From the NCBI GenBank assembly GCA_973895155.1, contig OZ316898.1, positions 7,737,079 to 7,801,078 of the forward strand: 64,000 nt of DNA, written 5' to 3'. The stretch is from Marsupella aquatica (lineage: Eukaryota; Plantae; Marchantiophyta). The translations under genes and the position numbers were made by a program. A model generated the notes under the pieces. That model saw only the letters and a program-made list of their open reading frames with translations. It did not search any database and was not told the DNA's origin. This document shows, piece after piece, positions 1,830 to 55,045 of this stretch (position 1 is the stretch's first letter; the number at the start of each line of letters is the position of its first letter).

Positions 1830-2621
1830 GGGCATGGGGAGTCTGGGTGCAAGGAACCCTTCCTATGTAGCGCACGGGTATTCAGGCTAGTAAACATGGT
1901 TGTCAATGATATGCAGAAGCACCACTCATACTTCCAAATGCAACAGTCACTTACTTATGATTCTTTGGCTTACACCAGCTCGCATAATGGATCACATTGA
2001 GGCAGCTTGGCTAGACATATAGTCCTCACAGATATCTGGATGCTCTCAAGTCCACTTTTAGCTTGACAATGTGGCCTAGACAAAACTAATAGCCAGCCCA
2101 CACTTGCTAAGGGCTTGCTAAATGGAGGGTATGGCTACCAGCAATTTACAGGGAATTTTTCATGCTACAAGGACAAACTCTTATGTGCCCAGAAAACTTT
2201 CCTCATAGTAGACCTACGTGTAAACTCACTTTTGTGTCAGTTGGTGCTTTTTAAAACTTTCAAAATTCTCTTACATCAATTTGGCTGCCAAGAGAGTTTC
2301 ACACTAACCTTTTATATTGTGCCACTTTTGTCAAAAAAGCCACCAGTTAGTCATGCCTGGTTAAGTAAGTTTGTGGATAGGTTCTTTTTTTCACAAAGCT
2401 TTTTGCAAAAGTTGCACTAAAATAGTTACAACCTTTGCAGGTAGGTCTAGTACCAAACTTTTTTTCTCATACAAAGAAAAGGCCCTAAATACTCCACCAC
2501 TCTCCAAAGCAAACTTACTCCCTTGGTAGTCAAAACTTGGTTTCCAAAAGCTCAAATATTGTGCCATTTTTCAGGAAGCCAATTTTAACTCCTTTCTGGG
2601 TAGCAAACTCATTGGCCATCT
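1830..2621 (-). pseudogene. Possible very decayed Mutator/FAR1-like coding remnant interrupted by the copia element (continues at 8276-8370)
   Basis: Removing the copia plus one TSD joins DGTSRAFVGL*|MANEFATQKGVKIGFLKNG in frame, resembling the start of a MuDR DNA-binding domain. The rest is full of stops. Confidence 0.3.
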
Positions 2622-2936
2622 TGTGGAGAGAAATCAGATCAGGAAAAACACTCCAAACAATAGTTACGTGGTTCATCTCAAGGTTGGCTACGTCCACGGG
2701 AAGACCAAGCTTTATTAACCGTTATGTGTCTACTCAAGCATCACCATAGCTCTCATCTGTTCAAGCTCTCATTTCTTGCTATATCACTGTGTTCTCTCTT
2801 GAGAACTCTCTTGTGTGTTCTCACACCACATAGAAGTTGAAGAGATAAGGACCAATCTCTTCAACTAGGGTTTACTCTAACCCTAGTTAACATATAGTTA
2901 ACCATAGTTCAACCCAAGACTAAGTTAACCTCTACA
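2622..2936 (-). repeat. 3' LTR of copia element (315 bp)
   Basis: Starts TGTGGAGAG right after TSD CATCT and ends CTCTACA. Near-identical to 8037-8275. Abuts PPT (plus-strand AACTCCCCCTTGAC, 2937-2950). Confidence 0.93.
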
Positions 2937-3130
2937 AACTCCCCCTTGACTCACGTCTTGGGAGGGTTCATAACATTGTCTTTTCCTTACAAGTTCCTCT
3001 ACGGGAAGTTCAAGACAATAGGGCCAAAAGACCCTCCCCCTAATGCAAGGGTTAACTAGAACTAAGCCGTAGCCAATAAGACATCGGATGGAGTACTCAT
3101 ATATAGACATTTTCTTGGTTAACTCTATAT

Positions 3131-6100
3131 TTACAATATTTGTAAATAATTACAATGCCTTGAAAAACTATTGGAGTCTAATATTTTGGTATAAGCATCC
3201 GTTGGATTAAGCTTTCCATCAATCTTGACAAGCTCAAATTCATCATCCGATAATGCCTGTTGAATGAAATGATAGCGGACATCAATGTGCTTTACCCAGC
3301 CATCCATCACCTAATTCTTGGCAGTGTAAATTGCACTTTGATTGTCACAATGAAGATATACACACTCTTGTGATAAACCCATCTCCGTGACAAGCTTTTT
3401 CAACCAAATGATCTCTGATGCTGCTTCTGCTGTCGCTACATACTCGGCATCCATAGTAGACTTTGCAACACACTTTTGGAGAGTAGACTTCCAACTAATG
3501 CATCCACCAGCAAGTGTAAATACATATCCAGTTGTTGAACTCCTCTTATCCAAATCACCTGCGTAGTCTGCATCCACATAATCCTGAAGCACTTTCATAT
3601 TGTTTGAACTTGCATCAAACAATAAACCCTTCTTAGTGGAACCTCTGATGTAGTGCAAAATCCATTTCACTGCTTCCCAATGAACTTTTCCTGGATTTGC
3701 CATGTATCTGCTTACCTTGCTAACGGCATAAACTATGTCTGGTCGGGTGCATACAATGAGATACATTAAACTACCCATAGCACTTTCATAAGGAACTTTG
3801 GACATCAAACTTTTTTCTGTTGCATCCGATGGACAAAATGCTGTAGAAATATTAAAATGCCTTGCCAAAGGAACACTCACAGCCTTAGCATCTGCCATAT
3901 TGAATTTTGAGAGCACCTTCTCTGCATATCTTATTTGTGTCAGCCAAAGTTTGGCTTTGTTCACATCCCTCACAATCTCCATGCCTAGGATCCTCTTGGC
4001 TGTGCCCAAGTCCTTCATCTTAAACTCAGAACTGAGTTGGGCCTTAAGCTTATCAACTTCGCCCCTATCTTTTGCTGCAATGAGCATGTCATCCACATAA
4101 AATACAAGGATGACAAACTTAAAACCTGTGATGTTCACACGCCTGATGTAAACACATGGATCGTACACACTTTGCACAAATCCAAGTGATTTAAAAAATT
4201 TATCAAAACCCTTGTTCCACTGCCTTGGGCTCTGCTGTAATCCATACAAGGATTTTAGCAATCTGCATACCAAATTTTCCTTGCCCTTTTGCACAAAACC
4301 CTCTGGTTACCTCATGTAAATCACCTCATCCAACGATCCATGTAAGAATATCGTGACAACATCCATTTGATCTAAAACCAGATCAAATAAAATTACAAGA
4401 GCACATAGCAAACGTATTGTTGAATACTTTGCTACAGGTGAAAAAACCTCATTGTAGTCTATACCTTTTTGTTGAGTAAAACCCTTGGCTACCAACCGAG
4501 CCTTAAATATCTTCTCAGCATCCTCCGTGGGTCCATCTTTTTTCCTATACACCCACTTGCTGTCAACAGCCTACTTGTTACTAGGTAGACTTGTGAGTTC
4601 CCAAGTCTTGTTATCATGAAGTGATTTCATTTCCATGTGCATCGCCGCTTGCCATTGTTGCTTCTCCATAGAAGCTGGGACCTCTCGAAATGAGGATGGA
4701 TCTTCATCTTTTGTCACCAATGCATCAATAGATTCTTCATCCAAATCCACTTGATCAGAAGGAAGCCAAGTTCCATACCTTTCCCGGGCTTGACGTTTGC
4801 GAGTTCCTCTTCGCACTGAAGACTCTGGCTGATCTGATTGTAGTGTACTTTGCCTTACAGTGGTGTCAACATATTCTTCATCTGACACATCCTTTCCCCT
4901 TAAATCCTCTAGACGAGATTGCTCTTTGTTAGTAGTAGGGAATTGATCTATCTCCCCCTCCTTCAAGGATTTTTCTTCATTGAAGGATACATCCCGACTA
5001 ACAAGTAACTTGCAATCAACTGGATCCCACAACCGATAACCTTTAACTTCACGCTGATAACAAAGAAAAATGCATTTATGGGCTCTGGGATCTAGCTTAG
5101 TTCTATTGTTGCTAGGAACATGTGCATATGCTTCACAGCCAAAAACCCTCAGCTTTGAATAATCAGCAAGTCAATTGTGTCATAACTCAAAGGGGGTTTT
5201 GTAAGTAATTGCTCGACTAGGAGAGAGATTTACTAGATAAGCAGCAATGTTGACAGCTTCCGCCCAAAAGATTTGTGGCAATTTAGAGTGGCTCAACATG
5301 CTCCTTGCTCGCTCCAACAATGTGCGGTTGAGTTGCTCAACAACATCATTTTTCTCAGGAGTGTACACAGTTGTGAGATGGTGAATAATTCCCTTATTTG
5401 CACAATACGTGTTGAACTTGCCAGAGGTGTATTCACCACCATTATCTGATTGTAGATATCTCACATTCTTTGCAGTCTGTGTCTCACCTTGAGCTACCCA
5501 TTGTTTGAAGATGGAAAGCACTTCAAACTTATGGGCAATTAAGTAAATTATCCAAACAAACCTTGAGTAATCATCAATAAACGATACATAGTATTGTTTG
5601 CCTGAATGTGAGGAAATCGGAGCAGGACCCCACACATCGGAATGAATATACTCAAGTACAGCTTTAAAATGATGAATGACAATACAAAATGGAGTTTTTA
5701 TTTTCTTGCCGACAATGCAATGATTACAAAAACTCAACTTGCATGCTTGCAATCCTAGTAGGCGATGTTGCTTGTGTAAGATTTCCAAACTTTTTTCACT
5801 CATGTGACCAAACCGAGCATGCCATAAATTGATTTTCTCCTCCTGAGATTGACCAAATTGACTTCGGCAAGAAGGGTGGTGCCTTCCAAGACATAGATGT
5901 TTTTTTTCCTCTTGCCAATAAGAACTTCATTTGATCCGTGCATGACTGTTAACACCCCATTAGTTGCACTCCATTGATAACCCTTTGCATCCAAGTAGCC
6001 AAGAGAAATCAAATTCTTACACATTTCTGGAATGTGTCTGACATTTGATAGAGTACAGTACTTGCCATCGGGTAGTTGAATCTTTACGAATCCAATCCCT

Positions 6101-7161
6101 AAAACTTTGCAAGAATGATTATTTCCCATCAAAACAGATCTGTTGATAGGAGTGTAGGATGAGAAAAATTCACACATATAATACATGTGATACGAGCAAG
6201 CGGAATCCAAAATCCATTGATAATCCTCAACTTGGGAAGTGGTACACAATGCAAATCCTTCACTATCCTCTTCTCGAACAACTATTTGGGCTGAAGAACC
6301 GACAACTTCCTTGAATGTGTCTTTGATGCAAAAATTCTTCTTCATGTGGCCCACTTTGTCACACTTCCAACACTTTATCTCACGAGTAGACTTGGATGGT
6401 GATTTGGATCGAGATCTAGATCTGGATCTAAACCTCCTCCTACCAAAAGATCGGTCGTGGAACCTTCCTCGCACCATGGGAAGTGGGTTAAACCTTTTGT
6501 TTTCATGAGATGGCTCCCTTGATTTTCCTCTTTCTACCAACAGTATTGTTGATGATGAGGTTGAGATAAGATGAGCTGAAGAAACCAGCTTAGACTGCAT
6601 GTTATCGGTCAATAGGGCACTCACCACATCATTGTAGGATATAGTTGTCTTCACGGAATAGAAGAACTCGAGACAAAGATTGGTACGAAGGTGGTAGTGA
6701 GCTCAAGAGTTGTAAGGCTTTATTTTCTTCGCTTAAATGCTCCCCCAAATTCTCTAGGTCAACCACAAGATGATTGAACTGATCGATCTGATCTTGAATC
6801 TTGACTCCATCAGCCATTTTGAATTGCATGAGCTTTAGGCTTGCATACATTCGGTTTGACATCTCCTTCTTGTAGTACTTGTTGTGTAATGCTTGAAACA
6901 AGTCCGTCATCGTTTGTGTTGATTTTTCCTCGAACTGCTTCTTCACATTGTTTTTCAGGTACATTCCAACAATGCTTACCGCTTGATCCTGAAGATCATG
7001 CCAATCATCATCTTCCATCTCCTTGGGTTGAGATCTTAGTACCTTGCCTAGGCCCATCGCCTAAGTGCATCCCTCACGTTACGTTCCCACATTGTATAGT
7101 CCATCCGACCATCAAATTTTTCCACCTCAAACCTTGGACCTCCAATCCTAGTAGTCGTCAT
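3131..7161 (-). pseudogene. Copia gag-pol polyprotein, frameshifted and with premature stops
   Basis: Gag start FEVEKFDG. Zinc knuckle CWKCDKVGHMKKNFC. Protease WILDSACSYHM. Integrase IHSDVWGP / SDNGGEY. RT KARLVAKGF, LYGLQQSPRQW, YVDDML. RNase H DADYAGD...CDNQSAI...HIDVRYHF. Split over at least 6 ORF fragments. Confidence 0.95.
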
Positions 7162-20806: not shown

Positions 20807-21906
20807 TTTTACTTTCTTTTTCAAGAGACAATTAGAGGAAATATGTCAAAATCAGATTGATGGGCAGTATTTTCCATAAATTTCAGAAATATACAAAGAG
20901 TAAGATCTTGCAGGATTTGAAAAGGATTTAAAGTCCTACAATAAGCTAGATACAGTGTGGCTAGGTAGATGAGAAGCGACCATGAGAACCTGGATCTTCG
21001 TTTCTCCAATCAAGGGCTGAGAGACGAACAGACATGCTCGCTTCACGAACTTCATTGGAAATTGCTGATAATATGAATATAGTAAGCTCCTGAGTTGACA
21101 TCTGGAGCATGTGATCCACAATGCCAAAAAAACGGTTTAATCTATTTAAGTTTCGAGGGGCCATTATTGTCCATATTGGCCTGGCAACAAGGAGTTATTT
21201 AACTACTTACAGTAGAATATAAAGGTGTGAACCTACTCTTCAGGCCTATTGTCTAGAGTGTTTAGACCATGAAGTTAGGGCTGCAACTGAAGTTAGGGCT
21301 GCAACTGAAGTTAGGGGGGTGCAAATGGAAATAAGGGATTATTTAGAGGCATGTGAGACTTTAAAATGCTCAGCGTGGCAGGAGTCATTGGGAACCCAAT
21401 TCAAGCTGGATGGATGAACAGGCAACAAGAGTGGTACACGCTTGAATGTACTCCACTTTATTTCAGGGCTTGAATGTACTCCCCTCTATTTTGGTTTGAA
21501 TAACCAGCATTAGTCCAGTACTCATTAATCTCTGAAAGATTTTTCACTGATTTTACTTTCTTCACAAGGATACAAGTAATGCACAAATCTCAAAATGTGT
21601 GATGGGCATTAATTCTAAAGTTCAGAAATATACACAGAGAAAAATCTTACTGGGATTTAAGAAGGATTTAAACTCTTACAATAAGCGACCTACTGTAGTG
21701 AGAGAATCTCGATCCTTGTTTCTCCAATGGAAGGCTGAGAGACTGACAGTCATGCTCGCTTGTCTAACTTCCATCGGAATTGCTGAGAATATGAAGGATT
21801 AAATAAACTCCAACAGTGAGCGAGGTACAGTTGTGGCAATGTCGATGAGATTCTCGATCCTTGTTTCTGTAATCGAGGGCTGAGAGACTGACAGTCATGC
21901 TCGCTC
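20807..21906. repeat. Diverged direct repeats upstream of the host gene (20807-21080, 21551-21797, partial 21846-21906)
   Basis: Shared blocks TTCAGAAATATACA, AGGATTTAAA, TACAATAAGC, GGCTGAGAGAC..CATGCTCGCT. Confidence 0.8.
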
Positions 21907-22049
21907 AGACGAACGCAATAAAAAAAAAAAAAACTGGAAGAGGAAGAGTCTAGGAGTCCACGAGGTCAGCTTGCACGCTGCATGCAAATTGCGCATGAGC
22001 AATTGTCGTTTGCCATGCGTTTGTGGGCCCTCGTCTGCCTCCTTTAATT

Positions 22050-22092: not shown

Positions 22093-23533
22093 CTTCTCGG
22101 TCGCGTCCTCTGTCGCGCTCTCCTGTTGGTTTGGGACGGATCAAGCGGATAGATAGGTACATACCCTAGATAGAGGATTCAGTTTAATTTACATCTTAAC
22201 ATATGAGTACTCACGGACCATAGTGTAAACAACCGTACGCCACACCACACCGGCCGCGAGCTCTATGCGAAGCTGTGCTAAGCAGTCAACTGTCACTGGC
22301 TGGCTTGCTGGCTGGCTCTGGAATATCTCTAACCTGGCACCGACCTTAACTCCAAGCCATGCTGTGAAACTTGGCTTCCTCAGTTCCTCGAGAGCACAGA
22401 GCGCTCGCTCCTGTAGCTGGGACAGGTTGTAAAGCACGGCCAAATGAAGTTGGCTGAGCTGAGACCGACCTTCATTTTAAACTCGTGATAATGAAGTTCT
22501 TACTAACTGGAACACTTAGTTCTGTGAGATCGTCAGCCTCACTGATCTGCTGACGCCTCTTTGGGCAATGGGCCCATCTTGAGAGCCACTGTTCACGTGA
22601 AGACATGATCATACTTTGGTCTTTACTAAACTGTTGCGTGTAGCTGAAAGCTCGAAAGCCCGAAATGTGGGTATTAGATTAGTAGAGCTCCTCCCTCCAC
22701 CTATAGCGAGGGCGTTTGTGATTGCTGACGATCAGTAAGTTCAGCATGGAAACCATTTTGATTACGGGTTTTCTCCAGGGGCATTTCTGAGGCTGCTCTG
22801 GCAAAGCACAGTCACGACAAAGAATGCTGTCTTAGGGTACCCTGTCCCCAGTGGCCACCTGATCCGTGGCATCAAACCCGGGCATGAATATGCTCAGTCT
22901 GAGCCTCGAGTTCTTTCGCTCAGGCATTGCGCGAACACGGAAGTTGGACAGGTGCCGTCATACAGTAGTATGCATATGTCAAAGGTACGACACAGGTAGA
23001 GACCTAGACGGCCTAAACTAGTCAGAGAAAACTTTTGGAAGCTAAGTAGTAATCTGATGTGATCTACTTGTTCGAGCGAGCGCCAGGCCATGATCTACTT
23101 ACTGCTATAGCTCGAAGGAGAATTATGTTGGGAAGAAGGGAGGAAGGAAGGATGTTGTTGTTGTTCGATGGGACATTTGACTGGCTAGAATGAAGGTCGG
23201 TGGTAAATAAGACTGATCTAATTTGAATAGTTTCCAGAAAAAGGTGGCCCGGTGGAGGGAGACATGGAGACGTCATCCGGAAGGCTCGTCCCCAGCAAAC
23301 AGTGCTCGCAAGTTTCGAGCTTCTATTTAAATGCATCTACCGGCATCACATTCTCCGCAGAGCCGATCAATGCAGCTATCAAGCCTTGCAATCTGAAGCT
23401 AGCTACTGCACTACTCTACTCCTCACAAGTTGTCGACGACAGTCACAGGACTCTGGCTGTTCTGTTTTCTCAATACACTACTCACTAAGCTGCTGACGCC
23501 CAACACTTGCTTAGATTTCCAAGCAGCACACTC

Positions 23534-25673
23534 ATGTCTTCACCATCATACCGTATGATCATGGATCCTTTGGCCCCTTCTCGTACAGTTGGCACACATA
23601 CCTGCAGACGTCTGCTAATTATGTCCCTCGGTCTAGTACTCAGCATTGTGGCCGTCACAGCTGCATCTCCTGACTCAGGAAATCTTCAAGGTACTGGCAA
23701 GTTTGTATCCTCTATCTCGAAAGTAGACGACGGGTTGATGATCAGTTATGTACCTACTGTAGGTCGATGTCCGATATTTTCCTTCAGAGCAGTAGAAAAA
23801 TTCGTGAGTCTGAGCGTCCGTTCAAATCGAATTTTCAAGGCTGTGCTCTTCCAATTAATTAAGAAGCGATCACGATCCTCCCATTTCGATTCGTTTGAAC
23901 GACGAACTTGTGACCCACTGCATCAGTCATCTGTTGACTAGTAATTCTGTAGAAGTCCACGCTAGTCGCATTCAAATGTAATTAGCTGGGAGGATTCCGC
24001 ACCAATTGATTTCTTCGACAAAATTCCCGTCACTAGTTCTTTGTGCTTGCACATGCATTGAGTTGGGTAGTATTTCACTGGGTAAGATTGCTAATTATCA
24101 TTCGGTGCTGACAGTTTTTTAATCCTTTTAGCCTTTGTAGTCTGAGTATTTCAAACATGCCCTTGCCGGTACGATTCAATGCGGCATTCAAGTACGTTAA
24201 TTGTAGCATTCCCGACATCACTCTCTGGGTCTCTGCGAATAGTTTATTAGGGCTCGATGGCGACTCCGTCCGCCTGTCCGTTTGAATTGTTTCCTACGGA
24301 ATCGCAAGGTAGGCACAATTTAGACGTTCCCGATCATGGAGTCGACACAACAGGTTATCTGACGGCGCCGCGACTCCTGTTGCTGACAATCAGCTCAGGA
24401 TCATGCAATCATGCAATGTAATCAGATTGTGTTTTTAGAATCACTACGTAACGGTAGCGCATACATTGTTGGTAGTTCAGTCCGGACTGAGTTTCATGTT
24501 AGTTCAGAAAAATGAAGGAATAGAGATGGGCACTCCGCCATTGAGTTCATGGAGTTCAGCGAAGACATCATAATCTAATGGGTATATTTTATGGTCCGTG
24601 CACACATTTGTCCGTTTTCAAGTGTCTCCCTTAGTGCCGTAGCTCCGTAGATTAATTTCTAAACTTTTCTCTGGATCGTTATGAATGCAGCTGTGGGCGC
24701 TGTTCCTGCAGAAATTTCCTTGGCAAGCCATCCAATTCGGGACGAGCAGGCTGGACCGAACGGTAACTTTTTGTCTGCCTGAGCAGCCAAATTGATGTGA
24801 TCTGTCATTTAAATTTTATACCACAGAACTGCAAATTTCGAAATATTATCCTGTACCCAGTTAATTTGAATTCTTAGCCACCAAGTTAAATACGATTTCT
24901 TCCGCTAACAATGTAACAAATTTCCAGACGTTGTAGATCGAATTCGGACGGAGGGAACACCACAGGCTGAAGTCAGGCCGCCTGCTATTGGAACGCGTCG
25001 TGTGGAGGGATGGAGTCGAAAAATCTTGCGAGATATCTCTCCTCCTGGATTGTGGCCTACGCCTGATGACGTTACTCCAGTTGTGAACGACGAATTCCAA
25101 AGACGATCTCTTGTTATGGGCAGCACCTCTGCACCACCATTGGGTTCACCACCATTGGGTTCAGTCGGTCCACTGCTCGTGATGCACAGTTGGCAGGACG
25201 CAGAAGACTCGTTTCTTCGCCAAGCTCTTGTGGCTGATAAAACATACCCTGTGGCGCACTGGTCATCGATAGTTAACAAGCTCAACCGGCTGGGGTCTGT
25301 GATAAATATATCTTCACTCGCTTTCGGAATTCGTCTTCTTGGATCCTTGAGGGTGAATGTAGTGACCGCCGGAGACAGCTTGGAGAAAATGGAGCATGGA
25401 GATCAGGACTCTTTTCTCCCTGCCGCTGATAACACTTCTCCGGATCCAAATCTGGAAAGTGAAATGCAGTCACGGACTGGGCATTTCGAAGAGTCGTCGA
25501 CTGCTGTGCAGCAAAATGCTGCTGAAACATCGGAAGAACCCAAATTTCGTAGCAGGAGAAGTCTGCTGCAGGGTGACATTTCTCCTCCGGGAATGTGGCC
25601 TGATGCTGATGATGACGAGAGTCAGCTTTCCGAGTCCGTGGTGCTGCGGAGACGAAGACTCAGGAACATCTAA
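23534..25673 (+). CDS. Secreted pre-pro-protein, candidate multi-peptide hormone precursor (324 aa; exons 23534-23690, 24691-24762, 24928-25673)
   Basis: Hydrophobic signal segment RRLLIMSLGLVLSIVAVTAA. Two phase-1 GT-AG introns, with branch-like GCTAAC before acceptor 2. Exons total 975 nt, in frame. Repeated DISPPG[L/M]WP follows RKILR and RRSLLQG. Confidence 0.8.
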
Positions 25674-27385
25674 GCAGCCGGTGTTGTCTTGCTTCAAGGT
25701 GACGAGTGAGCAGGGATGATGTTGCCTATAGATTTACGCAATGTACAGTATAACACTGCAGGATGTGCTTACAGTACATGAGTGGTGGCGACCTGGACCA
25801 TTTTCCCTACTTTACAAAGGATTTTTCTGGGGTGTGCCGGTACTTTTCCTGAATTCGGAGCGCCGCGCCACCAAACCAGGACTGCTAAAAGATATGATGA
25901 GCAGGCCGACGATCTGCAAATAATTCGTCGGCTTGGGATTATAATACCGTTAAGGAGGACCGGTGTCGAATAGCACATCGGTATCCTAAGTATAGAGCTA
26001 GAGAAGTCAAGAACCAGAGGTTCGAATAGTAGTAGTGGAATACTGGATACTTACAGCAGTGTGCGCTGCTGCTGAACGAGAGGCTTGCAGACTCTAACTT
26101 GGAGAAATCAATCAAAAGTAGTCATGGAGTTGTGCAGTAAGCATTGACGGAGCCGCGACTCTCTGACTTGCTCCGATTGAAGAAAGTACGCGGGTCTTTC
26201 TTGTTTGCATTACCAAGACACCCACCCTAGGAGTCCGGGTCCCGCCCCCCACAGCTCAGCCCAGGTTGCCAGCCACTGTATTGTACTACTTACTTCATAG
26301 CAGATGTTTATTTGTAAAATCTAAGAGGAAATGATATAGATATGATATGATATGATATGATGCATAGATAGAGCGCGTTAAGTGCATATTTAGTCCGAGC
26401 TTGATTTGAGACGATAAATACGCTTCTTAAATTCTGAAGTGTTGCCTGCACAGACAGCGAGCAATTCAAATAAAAGATTACTTAATTCTACCAGACACGG
26501 TACAGCTTATAAAAGACTTGCATGAAACCTAGCTGAAGTGAGCAACAGCGGACGATGGGAAATGAGTCATATCTGTCAACAATTGAAGCAAATGATTGCT
26601 CAGGCTAGCTACCAGCTCACTTGTGATGTTTCTTGAGCATCGGTGGACGAACCGGGCATAGCTGATGCATGCATTCAAAACAAATCAAACAGAGGATTGC
26701 ATTTGCCAGGTTGACTGGAACCCCGACTGGAACGCGAAGACTGGCATTCATGACTTACTGTGATCTACGCTAGCTAGGGATTCACACTGCTGTATCCAGT
26801 TCTCTCCTTGTACAGTACAGTAGACTCGCATGTGAGATGAAATTCTTCGAGCATGATTGGAAGGCGAGCCTAATTTTTACCGTGAGCCAGTTATTGCAAC
26901 GAGAAATTTCTCCTACGAGACGTGCAGCATGCAATTTCGTTGAGCATGAGTCGATAATGGGCAAAATAAACTGAACTGTTACAAGCAACTTACGGGACAA
27001 GCAATTTACATGGAAGATTCCTCAAAGGCAAGCTTCTGTTAGTGACGGGCATTGATCATGGCCATGATTGGTGAGCATGAACAGGAATTCGTTAGACTCT
27101 GGACGGTTGACTAGAAACTGCTTCTATGTACCAGAATTTGGACTACAGGAGCCAACTTTTGGACGAAGTTTCGTGGACAGATTGATTCAGGGAATGAATG
27201 ACCTCACCTGAAGATAACTTGCAGTGCTGTGTACACTGTCAAAACTGTCAAACCAGAATTTGCAAATTCCAATGCATCGAGAAACGCGCTGAGATCCTGC
27301 TTGCAGAATTTAACATGCAAATTATGTACTGTAGTAGTTCTCAATTGGGAAAAAGTTATTTTAGGTTGCCTCCACACTTTAGCAG

Positions 27386-35084: not shown

Positions 35085-36849
35085 GAATCACCCGAGTGGT
35101 TTGAGACTGGTGGGTGCTGAATGGTGTTTGACCGTAAATTTCAGAATCCCCAGGCCAGGCTAAAATTCAGTACCTAGTCAATACTAATTATTTTAATCTA
35201 TCTGACCCTTTCTTAAGACCGGGGCACTTTACAAAAAGGGGTGGACGAAAAGAGAGGTAGCTTGCGTTCTAACATACTTGATCCACAGGTCAATTTGGAC
35301 TATCGTCTGACCAGCCAGAAAGGTAGTGCATTTAATATTGTACCATCTTCACCCTATACTTTCCATTTTTGAATCTGGCTATAATATCCAACAAAAGAGT
35401 GTTAGCTTTGTCACACTTTTCTAGCTAAGATGTTGCCAGTAGTTTGGCCAAAATGGGTATGGGTATGGGTATGGTTAATTGACATCAAATTATTACATGA
35501 TAGATGGCCCTTTTGACTTTGGAAGAAGCTTTGGAAATGAGTTATGTAAAACCCTCAAAGGGTTAATTTTGATAGTGGAGTTTAGTTGTAGACTTTGTAG
35601 GGGACTACTTAAGGAGTAGGGGTTCACTTTCTAGTGAATAAATATCTTAGGATATAGAGGGAATTTATTATGAATTTGAGGTAAGAGTGAAGGACCTCCA
35701 CTAATATTGTTGTCTTAGGGTAATGTCAATGGTAATTAAATGAGAAGTTGATTTATTGGGAGGGCGGGTCCCACTCTGCAGTAAGATCCCTACTCCCGCC
35801 CGGCTCCGCGCGGCACAGAGTCTTTACATTTGTTCGCATCATTTTGGTTTCGGTTTCTCGACTCTTTGCCTTAGGCTCATTCTCGCATTCTTAGTTTGAT
35901 CTGCAGTGCCCGTCGCAAGTCTCACCCTGAACCGCCTCACGTCTTGGCTTAATCGTTGGTGAACTCATTCTTCAAATGTTGGACAGATTTGCATGATAGA
36001 ATCGAAGTTTGGAGTGGGACAGACAAGGTGATCATACCGCCCGCTTTGGAAGTCGTAAACTCGGTGATTTCCAGGACCTCAGCAAGAAAGGAAATTAATC
36101 GAGGTTGCCATCTATTTGAATTGTTGTGGTGCTGAAGTAGAGTCAGCAGACGAATTAGTGACTTGCAGCAAGACTGCAGGAGCAACAACTTATTCATTGC
36201 TCAGGTTTTTAGTCGCAACCCTGTTGACTTCACCGCCCTCGCAGTCACAACCCTGTTAACTTCTGTTGTCGCGCCTGGTCAATGCGTGTCAAGTTTCTTT
36301 AACTTCTTGTTGTGGTCTATTCGCGTGTAAGTCTGTCATCCTGGACTCGAAGCAGAGTTAGATGGAGTAGTACTGCTTTGGACCATGGCTGATGGATGTC
36401 ATTTCATGCTGTCTGTCCGTGACCTTGAAGGTGTGAGGGGTTTACGGTGCAAGCTCCTTGGTTTGAAGACTTCAAGATTCTCCTTGACTCAGCAGGTATC
36501 AACGCCTTTGGTTTCTTTTTATTGCATGTGATGCCATGGATTTAAATTCTGTATCATCTCCTAGAAGTGGTTCAATCACTACCAGTTACACGAGAAGGTT
36601 AGCATGAAGTGAGAATGTGACAATGAATATAATCGTGAGTACGTGCTACTCTCCATATACAGCGAAAATGATGAGAGGGAATGAAACACTATGTTCAAAT
36701 TTGAACTTGGCAATGTGCAGTCCCACTTACGTGATCAAATTGAAGCAAAAATTCAGTAGCTTCGTCGCGCTGATTCAACTTTGAGGTGTGCTGTACTGCA
36801 TGTCATCGTGGTCCGGTAAGGTGAGAGTCTTTTAAGTTTATTGGCAAAG

Positions 36850-39800
36850 ATGAGTGCCAATCGTGTAGGCTTTGGACAGTCTCGGCTATTCAGAGACTTC
36901 CGAAGGAGTGATCTTCAGTTGCATATTAGGGATGACAAATTATGGCGTCGACAGCTGGCTGCTTGTAGGTCTGCAAGTATAGGGAAGATAAAGTGCCCTT
37001 GCACCATTTGCAACTGTAGGGGTAACCGTGTGAGTGTTCACACAGTCAAGAAGCGCCTATTACTGTACTCCCGACATCCATCTCAGCGACATTGGTGGGG
37101 GGATGAATGTGACACATCAGATGAGGAGTGGAATGAACACTTATGCGAGGTCAATCCTCCATCAGAGGGTAGCAATATAGATACTGGAGCTATAGGAGGG
37201 TCTGTCATTGATGTAACCTGTGATATGGAAATTCCCCGGTTGTTGGAGGATTTGGCATTGCCAGTGGAAAACCATCCAAGTGATCCTGTAGATGAAAGTC
37301 CTTCGAGGGAAAATCCAGAGAGAAGTGGGGAAGAGATGTTTAATATGGATGAGCTCTTGGAGTCCACAACTTCCACACCTCAAGAGCAGACTAGTCGAGA
37401 GGAGTGTTGGGATCAAGAGTCAGAAGAAAGAATGATGAATGCCTTTACAGAGGCATGTGCGCCTCTATATGAGGGGTGCAATACTTCCCAGCTGTCCTTT
37501 GTATTGACCTTTCTGAACACCTGCCATAACAACGGGTTTACTAACTCAGGTGTTGATGAGCTTCTTTCCTTGATGGCAAAACACACTATGCCATCAAAGC
37601 ATTTGCTTCCTAAGAATCTGTACGCATGTAAGAAGCTCATTGGTCATCTTGGATTAGATTATGTCAAAATCCATGCTTGTGAGGATGGGTGTGTTTTGTT
37701 CAGAAAGGATTTATTAGAGTGCGATCACTGTCCAACCTGCAAAAAACCTAGGTACAAGCAGGTTGGGCAGTCAAAGCAGGCAGTCAAAGTTCTCCGTCAC
37801 TTTCCCCTCATACCAAGACTGAGACGCATGTATAGATGTAAAGCCATTTCGGAGCTCATGACCTGGCATGCAGACAATAAGAGCAAGGATGGAAAGGTCC
37901 GTCACGTAGCAGATTCAAGGGCTTGGGCAGAAATTGAAGCTAATATAGATGATACTTTTGAGAGTGAGCCACGGAATGTTCATCTTGGATTAGCCTTGGA
38001 TGGTGTAAACCCGTTTGGTGAGAACAATCTAAAGCATTCCACATGGCCCGTAATGTTATTAAATTACAATTTACCTCCCTGGTTGTCTACTAAGAAGTTT
38101 TTTATTAGCTGTCTTTACTGATTCCTGGACCTGAATCTGTAACTGATCGTAACATAGATATCTACATGGCCCCACTAATAGAAGAGCTTTCAGAGCTCTG
38201 GAAAGGAGTCAAGTGCTTTGATGCACAAGATAGGCCGGGTAAACAAAAGTGGTTTACACTGAGGGCCATTCTATTATGGACAGTAAATGACTATCCAGCT
38301 TTGGGCCTCATTTCTGGTCAAGTGACCAAAGGATACCATGGTTGTGTAGTGTGTGGACCCAATGTCACTTGTAGAAGGCCCCAGTCTCTATCAAAAAATG
38401 TGTTCCCTGGAAGCCGTAGATGGTTGGAGGCCAATCACAAGTATCGTACTCCTGACTATGCTGCAAAGTTTGATGGAAAGATAGAGTCATGAGGCCCTCC
38501 CCCCAGGATGACATGCGAGCTAAAGCTGGCTTATGCTGCTGAAGTTGAAGAGTTTCTGAAAAAAGAAGGGGCCAAGCAAGGAAGCAAGCACTGCCCATCA
38601 AAGCTCCATGGAGTCAAGAGGAAACAGGGTCTTGCCGTGCTGCCATATTGGACTGTGAGTTATCACTTTACCTTTTCTTATCTCTCTTATTTAAACTAGT
38701 TATCTACAAGACTCTTTCATGTGGAAGTTTGAATTGAACAACTATTCATCAGTTTTGCTCGAGCACATTCTTGGTCTTTGTGAGGGAACAGGCCCACAGT
38801 GTTTAATTACAGTGTGTAATGTGCTAAGTCGCATAGATGTTTGGCAATCTCTTAGCTGGCAGGCAGTCTGGCTCTTGGATTGATTATGGGGGCTGCGAGG
38901 ACGGGCATCTGTAGAATTGGGTCTTTGCCTAGTCGGCTCTTCAGTTAGTTCTCCAAGGGTCTCTTACCCCTGCTTTGATGACCTGGTACTTTTTGGGTTT
39001 TTAGTATTTGTTTTTGTGTAGGCATGTGCAAATGAATGAATCAAACGATTAGAATATATTGTTTTGTTTTAAGATTGTAGTATGCGTAAATTAATGTTTG
39101 AACTAGCGAGATATGATTAATAATGCTTTGTAGTAGTTCTCGATGCTACCTACAACCGTTTGAAGGGCTGCCTGCAAAACTTTAGAATCTAAATTAAAAT
39201 CTAATTCATTCTGATAAGCAGTAAGGGCCTGTCGTATGATTCCTCCTTTCCTGGTCATCATAGTGCCCTTTCTATTTCTTTTGGTGCCGTCCAAGGCCAG
39301 GAACCACGATGTAGAGTCGCTTATCTTATGGGTCATGTTGCCTCAATCTGCTATCGCTACCTGTCCACTTCACTTCCTTGGAAAGACTAAGATAACTTAA
39401 AAAACCCATAGAGTTTGCTCAAAACCCTACAATTTTGTTACTAACAGAACTGTTTCTTCATTAGTATTCTAAATTGTATTCTAAATTAGTCGACTCTGGC
39501 CACTGCAATTGGGACGGGAAAATTTTGGGAAGAGCCCACTACCAATCGTTGTTTTCTTATTATGGCAGGGGAGCCACAATGGCCAGAGTCAGTTTATTTT
39601 TCTTTGTATCCGTCGCCTATGCATTTCGAAGGTAGATGAATCTATTTGGCCACAAGAAATGACTGGTCAAGACTTTGCTCTCATGTTTATAACTTGTTAC
39701 TCATGTTCTTTTATATATGGCGCGCAGAAACTTCTGATCAATCATGTCCTTGATCCAATGCACACGGAGAAAAACATTGCGCATAATCTTATCCACACAA

Positions 39801-41687
39801 CTTCTGGGAAGAAGGACATTGCTGCTGTCCGAAATGATATGCAAGCTGAAGGTGTTCATGAGCAATTGTGGATGAAGCCTCATCCAAACCAGAAAAAAGA
39901 TCACTTTGTGAAACCCAAGGCACCATATGTCATGAGCAAATCAGAGCTCACACAATTTCTGGGAACCTTGAAGTGTCTGAAAGTTCCCACAGACTTTGGC
40001 AGCTCATTAGCTAAGTGTGTGCGGCCTAGCAATAAGCTGGCAGGTATGAAATCTCACGATTATCATTGCCTAATGCAGCAGATCCTTCCATTGGCATTGA
40101 GGAATTTGATGGACAAGGGACCCCGATTGGCCATTGTGAGTGTGTGCAGAGTTTGGCGTAAGATTTGCTGTAAAGTTTGGGACCCTACAACAAAGGATGC
40201 GTTGATGAAAGATGTAGCACAAACACTCTGTGCTTTGGAAATGCATTTCCCTTCGTCCTTTTTTGATGTTATGACTCATCTCATGGTGCATATAGTGGAA
40301 GAGTTGGACATTTGTGGGCCTGTATCACAAAGATGGATGTATCCAGTTGAGCGATACCTCAAGAATCTGAAGGGTTTTGTACGGAACAAGGCACGACCAG
40401 AGGCATCAATGGCAGAAGGATACATTCTCGAAGAGGCTTTAGGACTTGTGACAGAGTATATGGTAGACTGCCAATCTACAAGGAGGCGTGTTTGGGATGC
40501 TGAAGAGGAGGAAGGAGTTAAAGGGGTGGTGTTGGAAGGGGCCTCATGCAAAGTCACTCTGACTGTGGTAGATCGAGATGCTGCTCATACATACTACCTA
40601 CAGAATAATTTGTTGGTAACACCATGGTTGAGGTAAATTGTTACTTGCGCAACTATTATTTATGACACACTTTGTAACTTGCTGATAATAATTCAGATAT
40701 TGTCATTAGTGGTTGATATTGTACGTTTTTGGATTGGTTTGCAGGCTCTATGAGAATGCAGAGGAAGAGAGAAGAAGACAGAGGGAAGCTTTTGTCCAAC
40801 AAAATAACCAGACACGGCCTCCACGCAGTCGTAGAGCAGCAACTTATCCTCAAGAATTGGAGGGAATTCCCTTTGGGGTTTGGTTTAGGAATGAGATTTC
40901 CGAAGCTAACCTTGATGATGATGAAAACAAGTTGTTGTTGAGGGCTATTTCCTTTCCCCCAAGCCAGCATGGTCTGACGTATACTTCAATGAAGGCTTAT
41001 GGAAATCATTACAGGGTAATGCGCTGTAAAGGAAGGGATGGTAGTTGGCGTGAGCTATCCCATCTTAGGGACACAGATTGTCAAGGGTACGCTACATTTG
41101 ACAGTGGGTTGGCCACCACTTTCCACGAGCAGAGAAGGGATCAGTCAGGAGTTGCTTTGGCTAAGCAAACCTACGTTGGGGTTCTCACCCAGATTCTTAA
41201 ACTTGACTATGGACCACTATTGCGTTTAGAACCAGCCATTATCCTCAAGGCAAAATGGGTCCGGTCAAAGTGGGGACCAGACAATACTGGTCCATCTATG
41301 AAACATGATGAAACTGGTCTCTGGCTGGCCAACTTTAACATGCCTTATCCTGCAGCCGAGAAGTTAGACTATGTCTTGCCTGGTCAAGTTGAGCAAGTTT
41401 TCTTCTATCCTAACGAGGCTAGAACCTCATGGAGGCATGTCCTTCATAAGGAGGGAAGGTCTCGTAGAGTTGTTGAGGGTATCTATGATGTTGAATACAA
41501 TGATCTTGTAGACCATCACGAGGTAGTTGAAGCGGAGCTTGTTGCAGCTGCTAACCGAGCTGTGCCATTGGAGGAAGGAGAGAGCTTAGTCGCTCAGCAA
41601 ACAGTTGCAAGGGTGACAGATGAATCAGTTGAAGAGATAATACAGGATGATGTTTGGGAAGATGAGGAAGATTCTGAGGAAGAGTAA
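36850..41687 (+). pseudogene. tnpD: CACTA TnpD-like transposase (exons ~36850-38654, 39728-40632, 40745-41687), disrupted
   Basis: KIKCPCTICNC. Transposase_21 motifs LGLALDGVNPF, STWPV, YNLPPW, WTVNDYPA. DUF4218 motifs MKSHDYH, FFDVMTHL, RWMYPVER. DUF4216-like C-terminus with QVFF. Frameshift near 38110 and stop at 38490. Confidence 0.93.
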
Positions 41688-52700: not shown

Positions 52701-55045
52701 GCTTATTATCAACTTCAAAAGCAGTAAAGAAAGCTCATAAAGAAAGAAAGAAAAGGAACAAAATGAGAGTTAAGAGCTTGATTCCATGCGCTTGTCTCCA
52801 CCTTTCCTATCTAACCTTTGTGTTCGTGTGAGATTTGTTTTCTGTTGTTGGGGGGTGGGTGTGAAGGGAGGCGTAATCTCTTGAAGAGGGGTTTCTCACC
52901 AGCTCCTAAGCCAAAACTTAGGGTCATTAATGTGAAGCAATAGTCCCCAACATATGAGTCCTTGAAGTTGCAACTTACTGGTATTTGAACATATAGTTGT
53001 GGTATATGCTCAATGGACCACATGAGCTATCCAGACTTGTTGATAGACCTTAAATCAATGCACCCAAAACCTCATGAGTTTTGGTTGGGGAAATTTAGAG
53101 GTCCATCAGACAAGTTAATCCCTTCAATCCTTCGTTCACACACCTGCAGGGCCTCAAGGTGGGCTCGCAATTAATAGGGCACCATTAGCATTCTCCCACA
53201 AAAAATACGATCAATATTGCAACGGCTGCATACGTGCTAGATAGCCTTTAAATCTGAGCCAGAATCCGTCGGGTGTTCTTACGGGTCAAAAAGTATATGA
53301 ATACTTATTAATATCCCTTTAGAGTAAGGGGTCAAAAAAGGGTAAATGTCACATTGTTATCACACAATTAATCTAGAACTACTGCTGTACAAAAATTGTA
53401 AGAGTTTGGGGATGCCTATGAATAGCAAGACCATTCTCCCTTTCCTCATATGCTTAATATGTGGAGCCATCTGTTTATTTCTGTTTTTGGTCGGGGAAGG
53501 AGGGTAATGAAATTGGAAACCCACGGGGGGCTGCATGACTCGAGTTGGGGTGGGGGACCCATCAATCTTGTATCAAAACATAAAATGGCCTAAGTGGTTC
53601 TTAGGTCTTTGAGCTCCTGGCTATGGAGTTCAGACTGTAGCACAGTTTTCACGCCACTTCGACTACCCTCCCGCACTCAGTTTTTCTCGGAATCCAGTTT
53701 TCTCAGTTGCATTAGCTTGCTCTTGCCGAGGCGCATCAAATCGATATAAAACACGTCCAAAACGGTGCCGTATCGACCTACTTATGGTCACATTCATTTT
53801 CGCCGTTTTTCAGTCATTTTTCTGCGATTTTCGTCTTCCTTTCGACGGTCATATCTTGGTCGATCTTTCACGGATTTCAGATTTCTCAAGTGCTTTGTAT
53901 AGCTCTTCTCCGGGAGAATCAGATTGATCCCAAGAGCGGTCCAATTGGTCTCCTATTGCCCTAATTGGACTTTGATTAGCTCTCACGTTTTTTCTTCAAT
54001 TTCCACCGTTCTCACTTTCAATTAGCTTTGGGGTCCTGTAACAGTTCCTCGTTCACGGAATCCGGCATTCTCATGTGATTTGGTAGCTTTTGTCCGGGAG
54101 TGCAACATCTATCCCTACCGCGGTCCTTTTGGTGACATATCAACCACTTTCGGCTCCGATTATGATTCTGATTTAGTCCTCCTTTTTTGGTGACGGTTTC
54201 CCTTGATCAGCTTTGGAGCATTCCTGTATTGCCATGTTTCTCCTCCGATTGGTGGTTGCCTTTCTTCTTCAGTTCTGACAAGGTGGCTTTTGCCAAGTTT
54301 AGTGGACCAGTTTGCATTCCACCATCTTCGGGAGCTGTAGCAGCACGCTCAAATCAGCGGAGAGATATTCACTCGCACCGACTCCTCAACGGACACATCG
54401 ACGAGTGCTCCAGCTTTGTTCCCGGCTGTGCCTACACGTGCGCAACGGTTTTCTAGGCTAGCAGTGGCGCCGTTTCTTGGATTTTGATGCGGTGGGCTCT
54501 CTCCATAGCCTTCCCTTTCTTTTCACATGTCTTGGTTGGGCCTTTTGTCGCTTCTTGATGCGCTTTTGCTTTTATCGGGTTGCGACCTGTCATGTCTACG
54601 TTGAGAGTGTTGGCGTGGGGCAAGCGCCCAGCCCCCCCACACAGCTCTCCCCCCTCCTCCCCCCGCCTCGTGGTCGCCTTCGTGTTTGCTCTTCTTCATT
54701 GGATCTCTCTCATCTTCGTGATGACCCCATGCCCGATGCTCTGCCCGTCCCCCCAGTCTACTGCCCACCCCATCGACGCCCTGGCTCCTCTCCCCACCCC
54801 ATACCCCCTCCACCCCTCCAGCATCCCCCTCCGGCCTCTTCATCCATGTCGGTTCCCCCCCACCTCCTGTCCAGTCGTTCCCTGCTCCCTCCCAAGATGA
54901 GCGTCCCCTGCATACTTGTCCTGAGTGTGGCTGGGTTGGCCTCTCCCTTCCTCATCACCGCGGGCGGGGCCGGTGCCAACGTCGCCAGCAAGCACAATCC
55001 CAGCCCCAGCCCCCTCTTGACCCAGTTAGCTCTGCCCCTCCTTCC

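Follow-up and report, generated by a model that had tools for sequence, protein, structure and literature searches.

A candidate multi-copy precursor of secreted DISPPG(M/L)W peptides in Marsupella aquatica and other liverworts

The window analyzed here, a stretch of 64,000 nucleotides of contig OZ316898.1 from the liverwort Marsupella aquatica, carries on its forward strand a gene for a low-complexity protein in which a proline-containing 9-mer, DISPPG(L/M)WP, occurs twice, each time within a longer conserved unit. The sequence and its exon-wise translation give three exons separated by two introns, both GT..AG and both in phase 1, and an intact frame that, read from the ATG at 23534, has a coding length of 975 nt (324 codons). 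A six-frame motif scan of the 64-kb window found no second gene of this family. The features of the gene, numbered from the first base of the window, are as follows.

23561..23690, + strand: exon 1, from the conserved ATG, with the conserved SGNLQ at its end, directly before a GT donor
23561..23665, + strand: predicted signal peptide, with the n-region MDPLAPSRTVGTHTCRR (net charge +2) and an uncharged 20-residue core, LLIMSLGLVLSIVAVTAASP
23691..24690, + strand: intron 1, GT..AG, phase 1, with a Calypogeia intron at the identical position and phase
24691..24762, + strand: exon 2, 72 nt, a variable pro-region that aligns with Calypogeia exon 2
24763..24927, + strand: intron 2, GT..AG, phase 1, also in the Calypogeia model
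24928..25673, + strand: exon 3, with both repeat units and the stop codon TAA at 25671-25673, at 54-57% identity to three homologues
25017..25028, + strand: R-K-I-L site of the S1P/SBT3.5 type (RxxL/RxLx), one residue before core 1, a putative cleavage site
25032..25058, + strand: core 1, DISPPGLWP, preceded by RKILR
25059..25115, + strand: tail of unit 1, with TPDD, a variable linker and RRSLV (25101-25115) as downstream basic/Leu element
25554..25568, + strand: R-R-S-L-L site of the S1P type, two residues (Q-G) before core 2
25575..25601, + strand: core 2, DISPPGMWP, preceded by RRSLLQG
25602..25661, + strand: tail of unit 2, with the acidic run DADDDES, a linker and RRRRL (25647-25661) near the C-terminus

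An annotated homologue from Calypogeia fissa (P0002, named 'unnamed protein product') has the identical three-exon structure with matching intron positions and phases, at a locus that is collinear with the window locus, short non-coding patches included. SGNLQ at the end of exon 1 and GPN-D across the exon 2/3 junction are conserved between the window protein and its homologues. A preliminary description of this DNA had placed the exons at 23534-23690, 24691-24762 and 24928-25673, and this model holds, with canonical splice sites and the exon structure of Calypogeia. The protein length of 324 aa given there needs a qualification. The frame does run from the ATG at 23534, but further in-frame ATGs lie at 23555 and 23561, and because the Calypogeia start aligns with the third of these (23561, M10) and is preceded by stops in the Calypogeia sequence, a 315-aa product from 23561 is more likely, the ATGs at 23534 and 23555 being upstream alternatives without conservation in Calypogeia. 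Ahead of the hydrophobic core of the signal peptide, 12 of 21 residues are identical between the two proteins. Contigs from public sequencing runs were placed on 2,601 nt of the locus; none shows a splice joint, and all contain the introns. One contig of a related organism (B) lacks 2 bases at 25246 in exon 3, a deletion that would shift the frame and may reflect an allele, a homeologous copy or faulty assembly. In three runs, contigs match just the 33 bases at 23672-23704, covering the end of exon 1 and the splice donor, and diverge on both sides; their upstream part encodes a similar signal-peptide end, and they look like a paralogue elsewhere in the genome.

The N-terminus of the predicted product resembles a signal peptide, with a basic n-region of 17 residues, the uncharged core, and small-residue (-3,-1) sites after VTA or TAA. 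This segment is the sole hydrophobic peak of the window protein (19-aa Kyte-Doolittle mean 2.34). The same layout, a lone hydrophobic stretch at the N-terminus with a positively charged n-region and small-residue candidates for cleavage, was seen in at least 6 relatives, namely the Calypogeia protein, Riccia 026622 and 017747, Mp1g09210, Mp8g11600 and a longer model of Mp8g11620, none of which has a second hydrophobic peak; three orthologue groups are covered. Of the signal peptide that had been proposed for the window protein, a conserved, signal-peptide-like segment therefore stands, and its function in secretion remains a heuristic prediction.

Both repeat units, RKILR-DISPPGLWP-TPDD (25017-25070) and RRSLLQG-DISPPGMWP-DADD (25554-25613), were found exactly where they had first been reported. 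Comparison of the two 27-nt cores shows three synonymous differences (gat/gac, atc/att and cct/ccg) and one codon that exchanges L and M (ttg/atg). The best non-overlapping 9-mer self-match of the exon-3 protein is 8/9, against a peak of 7/9, reached 7 times, in 3000 composition-preserving shuffles. Relative to Calypogeia, core 1 shows five synonymous changes and one L/M change, while core 2 shows four synonymous changes with the amino acids unchanged. A motif of the RxxL/RxLx type adjoins each core, as RKIL and as RRSLL, and cleavage is predicted there from the motif alone. In an alignment of exon 3 with its homologues (A1), R58, R59, S60 and L61 of the unit 1 tail and D225, D227-E230 and R240-R242 of the unit 2 tail are invariant. 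The possibility that RRSLV (25101-25115) introduces a degenerate third core was rejected, as this RRSLV is the normal RRRxLL element that unit 1 carries downstream. At 25137-25160, a small in-frame tandem duplication (PPLGS PPLGS) occurs in the window protein only, the homologues having a 7-residue gap.

The architecture of the unit was derived from a logo of 43 distinct units in 13 proteins, which gave the consensus R-x-L-L-x(1-2)-DISPPG[ML]W-P-x2-acidic run-x(3-9)-RRRxL. Within the core, D1 is present in all 43 units, S3, P5, G6 and W8 in 42 each, I2 and P4 in 40 each, M or L at position 7 in 39, and P9 in 30. Upstream, R-5 (31 of 43), L-3 (36) and L-2 (32) stand in fixed register; downstream, an acidic run at +12..+16 is followed by RRRxLL at +21..+26. 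The remaining flanking positions are near background, and the spacers are unconstrained in both length and sequence. The homologues therefore keep the 9-mer far above background, with D1 to W8 at 39-43 of 43, as had been expected from the window alone; the conserved piece is longer than that 9-mer, since it includes the upstream R-x-L-L, the acidic run and RRRxL. Proteins contain 1, 2, 3, 4 or 11 copies, the last being at least 11 cores in one open frame of Mp8g11620. The shortest period, 25-28 residues in Mp1g09210 and P0003, indicates that almost only the core, the tail and the site are needed. Judging from the length of the conserved unit, a released peptide may be longer than 9 residues. 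In one member, R1flu_026622 (P0005), the units at 115, 217 and 317 have the acidic tail DDDYDEG or DDDYEGG, found in this member only, in which a Tyr in acidic context resembles a tyrosine-sulfation site.

Relatives were sought with a HMMER profile against 1.84 billion protein cluster representatives and with word-based searches, the window gene being searched and modeled exon by exon. A word search with exon 3 gave three homologues with BLASTP identities of 38-54% over the aligned part (41-57% in alignment A1), and neither the motif nor the RRSLL sites nor the acidic tails vary among these and the window protein. The profile search gave 10 proteins, and a word search with a Marchantia member added two more. 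All named members are from liverworts, are recorded as 'hypothetical protein', and come from two classes, Marchantiopsida and Jungermanniopsida:

Marchantia polymorpha: Mp8g11620, Mp8g11600 and Mp1g09210
Marchantia paleacea: Mapa_016361
Riccia fluitans: R1flu_026619, R1flu_026622 and R1flu_017747
Calypogeia fissa: P0002

In the profile search, homology between the two classes was limited to the repeat units. Mosses, hornworts, vascular plants and algae yielded no member in the profile search of the 1.84 billion representatives or in the word searches; both kinds of search could overlook single-unit relatives in other plants if these have diverged. A comparison of the single unit of P0010, the lone short relative (111 aa, model uncertain), with proteins of 61-194 aa found no short single-unit precursor except P0010 itself, and only two proteins shared any words with it. 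As far as the databases show, the family thus appears restricted to liverworts, and the earlier label of a plant peptide hormone was too wide in range; 'liverwort-specific candidate' fits the matches.

At least one family member is expressed, because Mp1g09210, described as of 'unknown function', is strongly induced in Mpacl5, a thermospermine-synthase mutant, as measured by RNA-seq and reverse-transcription quantitative PCR, alongside genes for small heat-shock proteins (PMC11020214). Logan/JGI contigs of P0001 and P0003 (L004-L007) gave no transcript evidence: the P0001 contigs (L005-L007) were considered as transcripts and set aside as genomic, since a gap the size of an intron separates their exon-2-like part from exon 3, and the P0003 contig (L004) has no clear match to exon 1 or exon 2. 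Some existing gene models in the family also call for correction. The current model of Mp8g11620 (P0004) starts at a Met within a DISPPGMWP core (nt 3001 of L008, gene region 2293-4320), while the open frame continues upstream to 2293 with two more cores (2815 and 2983) and an older 795-aa model adds a signal-peptide-like segment, so the present annotation is probably truncated at its 5' end. In P0012 (the Tak-1 model of Mp1g09210) and P0014 (Mapa_016361), a low-complexity, Ser/Cys-rich extension of ~90 residues stands before the signal peptide MARLPVQQ...; this is probably translated 5' untranslated region, because that signal peptide is where the Tak-2 model and the orthologue from Riccia begin.

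Selection on the gene was estimated from the ratio of nonsynonymous to synonymous substitution rates (dN/dS) against Calypogeia, at a dS of about 0.8. The ratio was 0.36 for exon 3 overall; the two units gave 0.11 and 0.14 and the remainder 0.37-0.51, indicating that purifying selection is concentrated on the units. Within Mp8g11620, any two of the nine perfect cores are separated by 2-5 synonymous changes over 24 bases; because these differences are synonymous only, the identity of the cores is explained by selection on each peptide and not by recent duplication or gene conversion. Selection on the peptide, first suggested from the two window copies, is borne out by both comparisons. An AlphaFold2 prediction for exon 3, made from a shallow 4-row alignment, gave a mean predicted local distance difference test (pLDDT) score of 48, a predicted template modeling score of 0.16 and three short helices, and the protein outside its N-terminal segment is accordingly predicted to be disordered. 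With 0 Cys in exon 3, this pLDDT and no Pfam match, the protein is Cys-poor and of low complexity, as had been noted. Pfam gave no match for the window exons or for 9 relatives, an ESM Atlas search with P0002 was blank, and no Rfam match was found in 20-30 kb.

Taken together, these properties are best explained if the gene encodes a prepro-protein from a family of multi-copy peptide precursors that are secreted, intrinsically disordered and specific to liverworts, a reading drawn from sequence comparison to which we assign a probability of roughly 0.55. In such a pathway, the N-terminal signal peptide would direct the protein into the endoplasmic reticulum, and prolines in the S-P-P of each core would likely be hydroxylated, and possibly then arabinosylated, as the general hydroxyproline code would predict. 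An S1P-type subtilase (of the SBT6.1 or SBT3.5 type) would cut at the R-x-L-L sites, before each core and again ~20 residues after it, and an Asp-dependent subtilase or an aminopeptidase would then trim the product to the invariant Asp. The expected products are acidic peptides starting DISPPG(M/L)W, two from the window gene and up to 11 or more from Mp8g11620, which would function extracellularly, a conserved receptor being their most likely target. The multi-copy proteins, among them Mp8g11620 with as many as 11 cores in a single open frame, strengthen the precursor reading, and the invariance of the core across the split between Marchantiopsida and Jungermanniopsida points to a conserved binding partner, most simply a receptor. 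The proposed order of cuts has precedents: S1P/SBT6.1 and SBT3.5 cleave RxxL/RxLx motifs (RALF23 at RRIL|A, PROSCOOP12 at RRLM|G), CLEL6 receives an initial SBT6.1 cut in the Golgi before the Asp-dependent SBT3.8 matures it, and SBT3.8 cuts PROSCOOP20 at TLLR|D (PMC13082318). The local contexts before the cores are ALLR|DISPPG in Marchantia, and KILR|D and SLLQG|D in the window gene. The claim of an undescribed precursor family divides in two: the family is conserved and matches no described family in Pfam or the literature searched, and its role as a precursor is a likely reading of the sequences.

Several observations weigh against this interpretation. The signal-peptide calls derive from hydrophobicity and the (-3,-1) residues, and the current models of Riccia 026619 and Logan P0006 have no clear signal peptide. 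There is no conserved cleavage site directly after the core, which leaves the C-terminal end of the peptide undefined, and the core lacks the C-terminal His or Asn that is usual in ligands of subfamily XI leucine-rich-repeat receptor kinases. The RxLL, acidic-run and RRRxLL flanks are conserved along with the core, a pattern that fits a motif acting in an intact protein as well. At 265-795 aa (315-324 aa for the window product), the members are longer than typical plant peptide precursors of about 70-150 aa, and the Jungermanniopsid members share a conserved middle region (SFLRQALVA...) of unassigned role. Finally, the four public runs that contain the window locus are all DNA assemblies and none is recorded as RNA, two of the four coming from the related organism, with many single-nucleotide differences, so that the splicing of the gene model was taken solely from comparison.

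Much of this could be accommodated if the secreted or endoplasmic-reticulum-targeted disordered protein works intact, its units serving as docking or glycosylation modules that bind an extracellular or cell-wall partner multivalently. The signal-peptide-like N-terminus and the predicted disorder fit such a protein equally well, conservation does reach both flanks of the core, multivalency would account for the changes in copy number, and the proteins are large for hormone precursors. We nevertheless consider this a minority explanation, though one with a real chance of being right, because R-x-L-L matches a known processing motif and keeps a fixed distance from every core, both ahead of it and behind it, the spacers are unconstrained in length and sequence, and a structural hydroxyproline-rich glycoprotein would need S-P-P more densely than once per 25-50 residues.

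The P-P-G of the core raises the question of whether the protein is instead cytosolic, its repeats serving as proline-rich GYF-domain ligands (PPG and a hydrophobic residue after it) within a multivalent adaptor for mRNA control. SMY2-type GYF domains accept PPG followed by a hydrophobic residue, and known GYF partners carry repeated PPPPGF motifs. PPG[MLVI] is present in 42 of the 43 units, and the plant GYF protein PSIG1/EXA1 binds PPGF (PMC5657617). This explanation is nonetheless unlikely given the signal-peptide-like N-termini in three orthologue groups, the absence of RNA-binding or other cytosolic domains in a Pfam search of the window protein and 9 relatives, and the constancy of D1, I2, S3, W8 and the upstream R-x-L-L, which goes far beyond what a PPG-hydrophobic ligand needs.

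We give similarly poor odds to a precursor of a ribosomally made, modified defense peptide, orbitide-like or burpitide-like and cyclized, for example, via Trp or Pro. Plant precursors of this kind typically carry several cores set between conserved flanks, and the DISPPG core contains Pro, Gly and Trp, but neither a BURP domain nor any other Pfam domain was found in 10 members, the peptide and its tail are strongly acidic, unlike antimicrobial peptides, and the DISPPG(M/L)W core is invariant across two liverwort classes whereas the cores of such defense peptides are usually variable.

A diverged branch within the RGF/GLV/CLEL family is less probable still. AtRGF1 has the sequence DYSNPGHHPPRHN, with which D1, S3, P5, G6 and P9 of the core coincide. 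A further similarity lies in the processing of RGF precursors, in which SBT6.1 makes a preliminary cut at RRxL-type sites and maturation takes place in front of an Asp (PMC13082318). The RGF family, however, is defined by D1, Y2, P10 and N13, with a conserved H8, and liverworts have a single canonical RGF gene, Mp6g09180 (PMC8329595). In the DISPPG units the sulfated Y2 and H8, P10 and N13 are absent: position 2 is Ile in 40 of 43 and never Tyr, position 8 is Trp in 42 of 43, position 10 varies (D/V/I/T/P), and position 13 is Asp in 29 of 43. Moreover, profile and word searches linked no RGF sequence to the family. That the locus is non-functional, a chance open reading frame, pseudogene or transposon debris, is scarcely credible, since the transposon-rich surroundings, the DNA-only public runs and the 2-nt deletion at 25246 in one contig of a related sample are set against an intact frame with canonical splice sites, an orthologue of identical exon structure in a collinear locus, a dN/dS of 0.36 overall and 0.11-0.14 in the units, and conservation of the family across two liverwort classes.

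If the family does encode secreted peptides, a broader and more tentative proposal, for which we would give somewhat less than even odds, is that DISPPG(M/L)W is an ancient, liverwort-wide ligand and the first example of bryophyte-lineage-specific peptide hormones, produced from polyprotein precursors by two-step subtilase release (at R-x-L-L, then Asp-directed), perceived by a conserved receptor and, through Mp1g09210, tied to stress or thermospermine responses. The bryophyte peptide ligands known so far, such as CLE, RGF, RALF, EPF and PSK, all belong to families shared with flowering plants, and a 2024 survey, which screened open reading frames under 200 aa, stated that angiosperms were the only source of the lineage-specific peptide families known at that time (bioRxiv 10.1101/2024.05.13.593875). 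If true, the DISPPG family would be a liverwort-specific signaling invention, apparently retained since the divergence of Marchantiopsida and Jungermanniopsida. In a literature search of about 8.4 million texts, the motif strings occurred in no plant paper, the matches being irrelevant apart from one cnidarian paper, and of the Marchantia gene identifiers only Mp1g09210 was mentioned, in the thermospermine paper (PMC11020214). The family was probably missed because mining pipelines cap precursors at ~200 aa while its members have 265-795 aa, and because some gene models are truncated, that of Mp8g11620 beginning inside a core. Three members in the genetic model Marchantia polymorpha make direct testing feasible now, and the strict R-x-L-L register offers a natural set of substrates for subtilase processing in non-flowering plants, which a 2026 review called unknown (PMC13082318).

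The surroundings of the gene contain conserved non-coding patches and transposons.

22414..22439, no strand assigned: conserved non-coding patch ~1.1 kb upstream that matches the Calypogeia locus at 26/26 nt
27146..27190, no strand assigned: conserved patch of ~45 nt, ~1.5 kb downstream, about 93% identical to and collinear with the Calypogeia locus
3311-7057 (- strand), 36841-40636 (+ strand) and 54477-57984 (+ strand): transposons around the gene

The patch at 22414-22439 is possibly a cis-element and may or may not belong to this gene. Further non-coding patches collinear with Calypogeia lie at 21872-21926, 23193-23286, 26157-26204 and 26419-26456, and the collinear patches may be cis-elements or tiny exons of unannotated neighbors. 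The transposons comprise Copia-type (RVT_2, rve, Pol_BBD) and CACTA-type (Transposase_21, DUF4218) elements and an RVT_1 element, whose family also adjoins the Calypogeia gene (71% identity over 3 kb).

In comparison with known systems, the unit fits no described family, in agreement with the preliminary description: Pfam is blank for 10 members, the RGF residues are absent, and the signatures of CLE, CEP and RALF are absent as well. The units contain neither the 12-13-aa CLE motif R-x-x-P-x-G-P-x-P-x-H-H/N, which lies at or close to the C-terminus, nor the 15-aa CEP domain ending in S-P-G-x-G-H, and the RALF features, four conserved Cys and a YISY motif behind RRxL, are missing, exon 3 having 0 Cys and no YISY. 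The general build of a secreted-peptide precursor, a short conserved Pro-containing domain in a variable, Cys-poor pro-protein, is present, and the length lies outside the usual 70-150 aa. Like multi-domain CLE, CEP and hydroxyproline-systemin precursors, the DISPPG proteins carry several short Pro-rich copies, vary in copy number among paralogues and have diverging spacers, but their core is unrelated, and the R-x-L-L bracket and the acidic run of each DISPPG unit are missing from those precursors. RGF/GLV/CLEL precursors such as CLEL6/GLV1 are likewise secretory pro-proteins with an S1P/SBT6.1 pre-cut at RRxL-type sites, maturation before an invariant Asp and a short Pro-containing peptide; they are single-copy, whereas the DISPPG precursors are multi-copy and far longer, with an acidic tail, and lack the sulfatable Tyr2, His8, Pro10 and C-terminal His/Asn13. 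PROSCOOP proteins share the RxLx/RxxL sites cut by SBT3.5, a lineage-restricted distribution and, in TLLR|D of PROSCOOP20, the local context of ALLR|DISPPG, but SCOOPs are single-copy and C-terminal, have an S-x-S core, occur in Brassicaceae only and are unrelated in sequence. GYF-domain ligands also combine P-P-G with a hydrophobic residue and are often repeated in disordered proteins, yet they are cytosolic, without a signal peptide, and their conservation is limited to the Pro-rich core. Finally, cnidarian GLWamide preprohormones are secretory precursors built of multiple copies, with units that may have the sequence ...SPPGLW (PMC8638164); these units end in Gly and basic residues for amidation, whereas in the DISPPG family the Trp is followed by Pro and an acidic run, and the GLWamide precursors are a look-alike of the liverwort proteins and not a relative.

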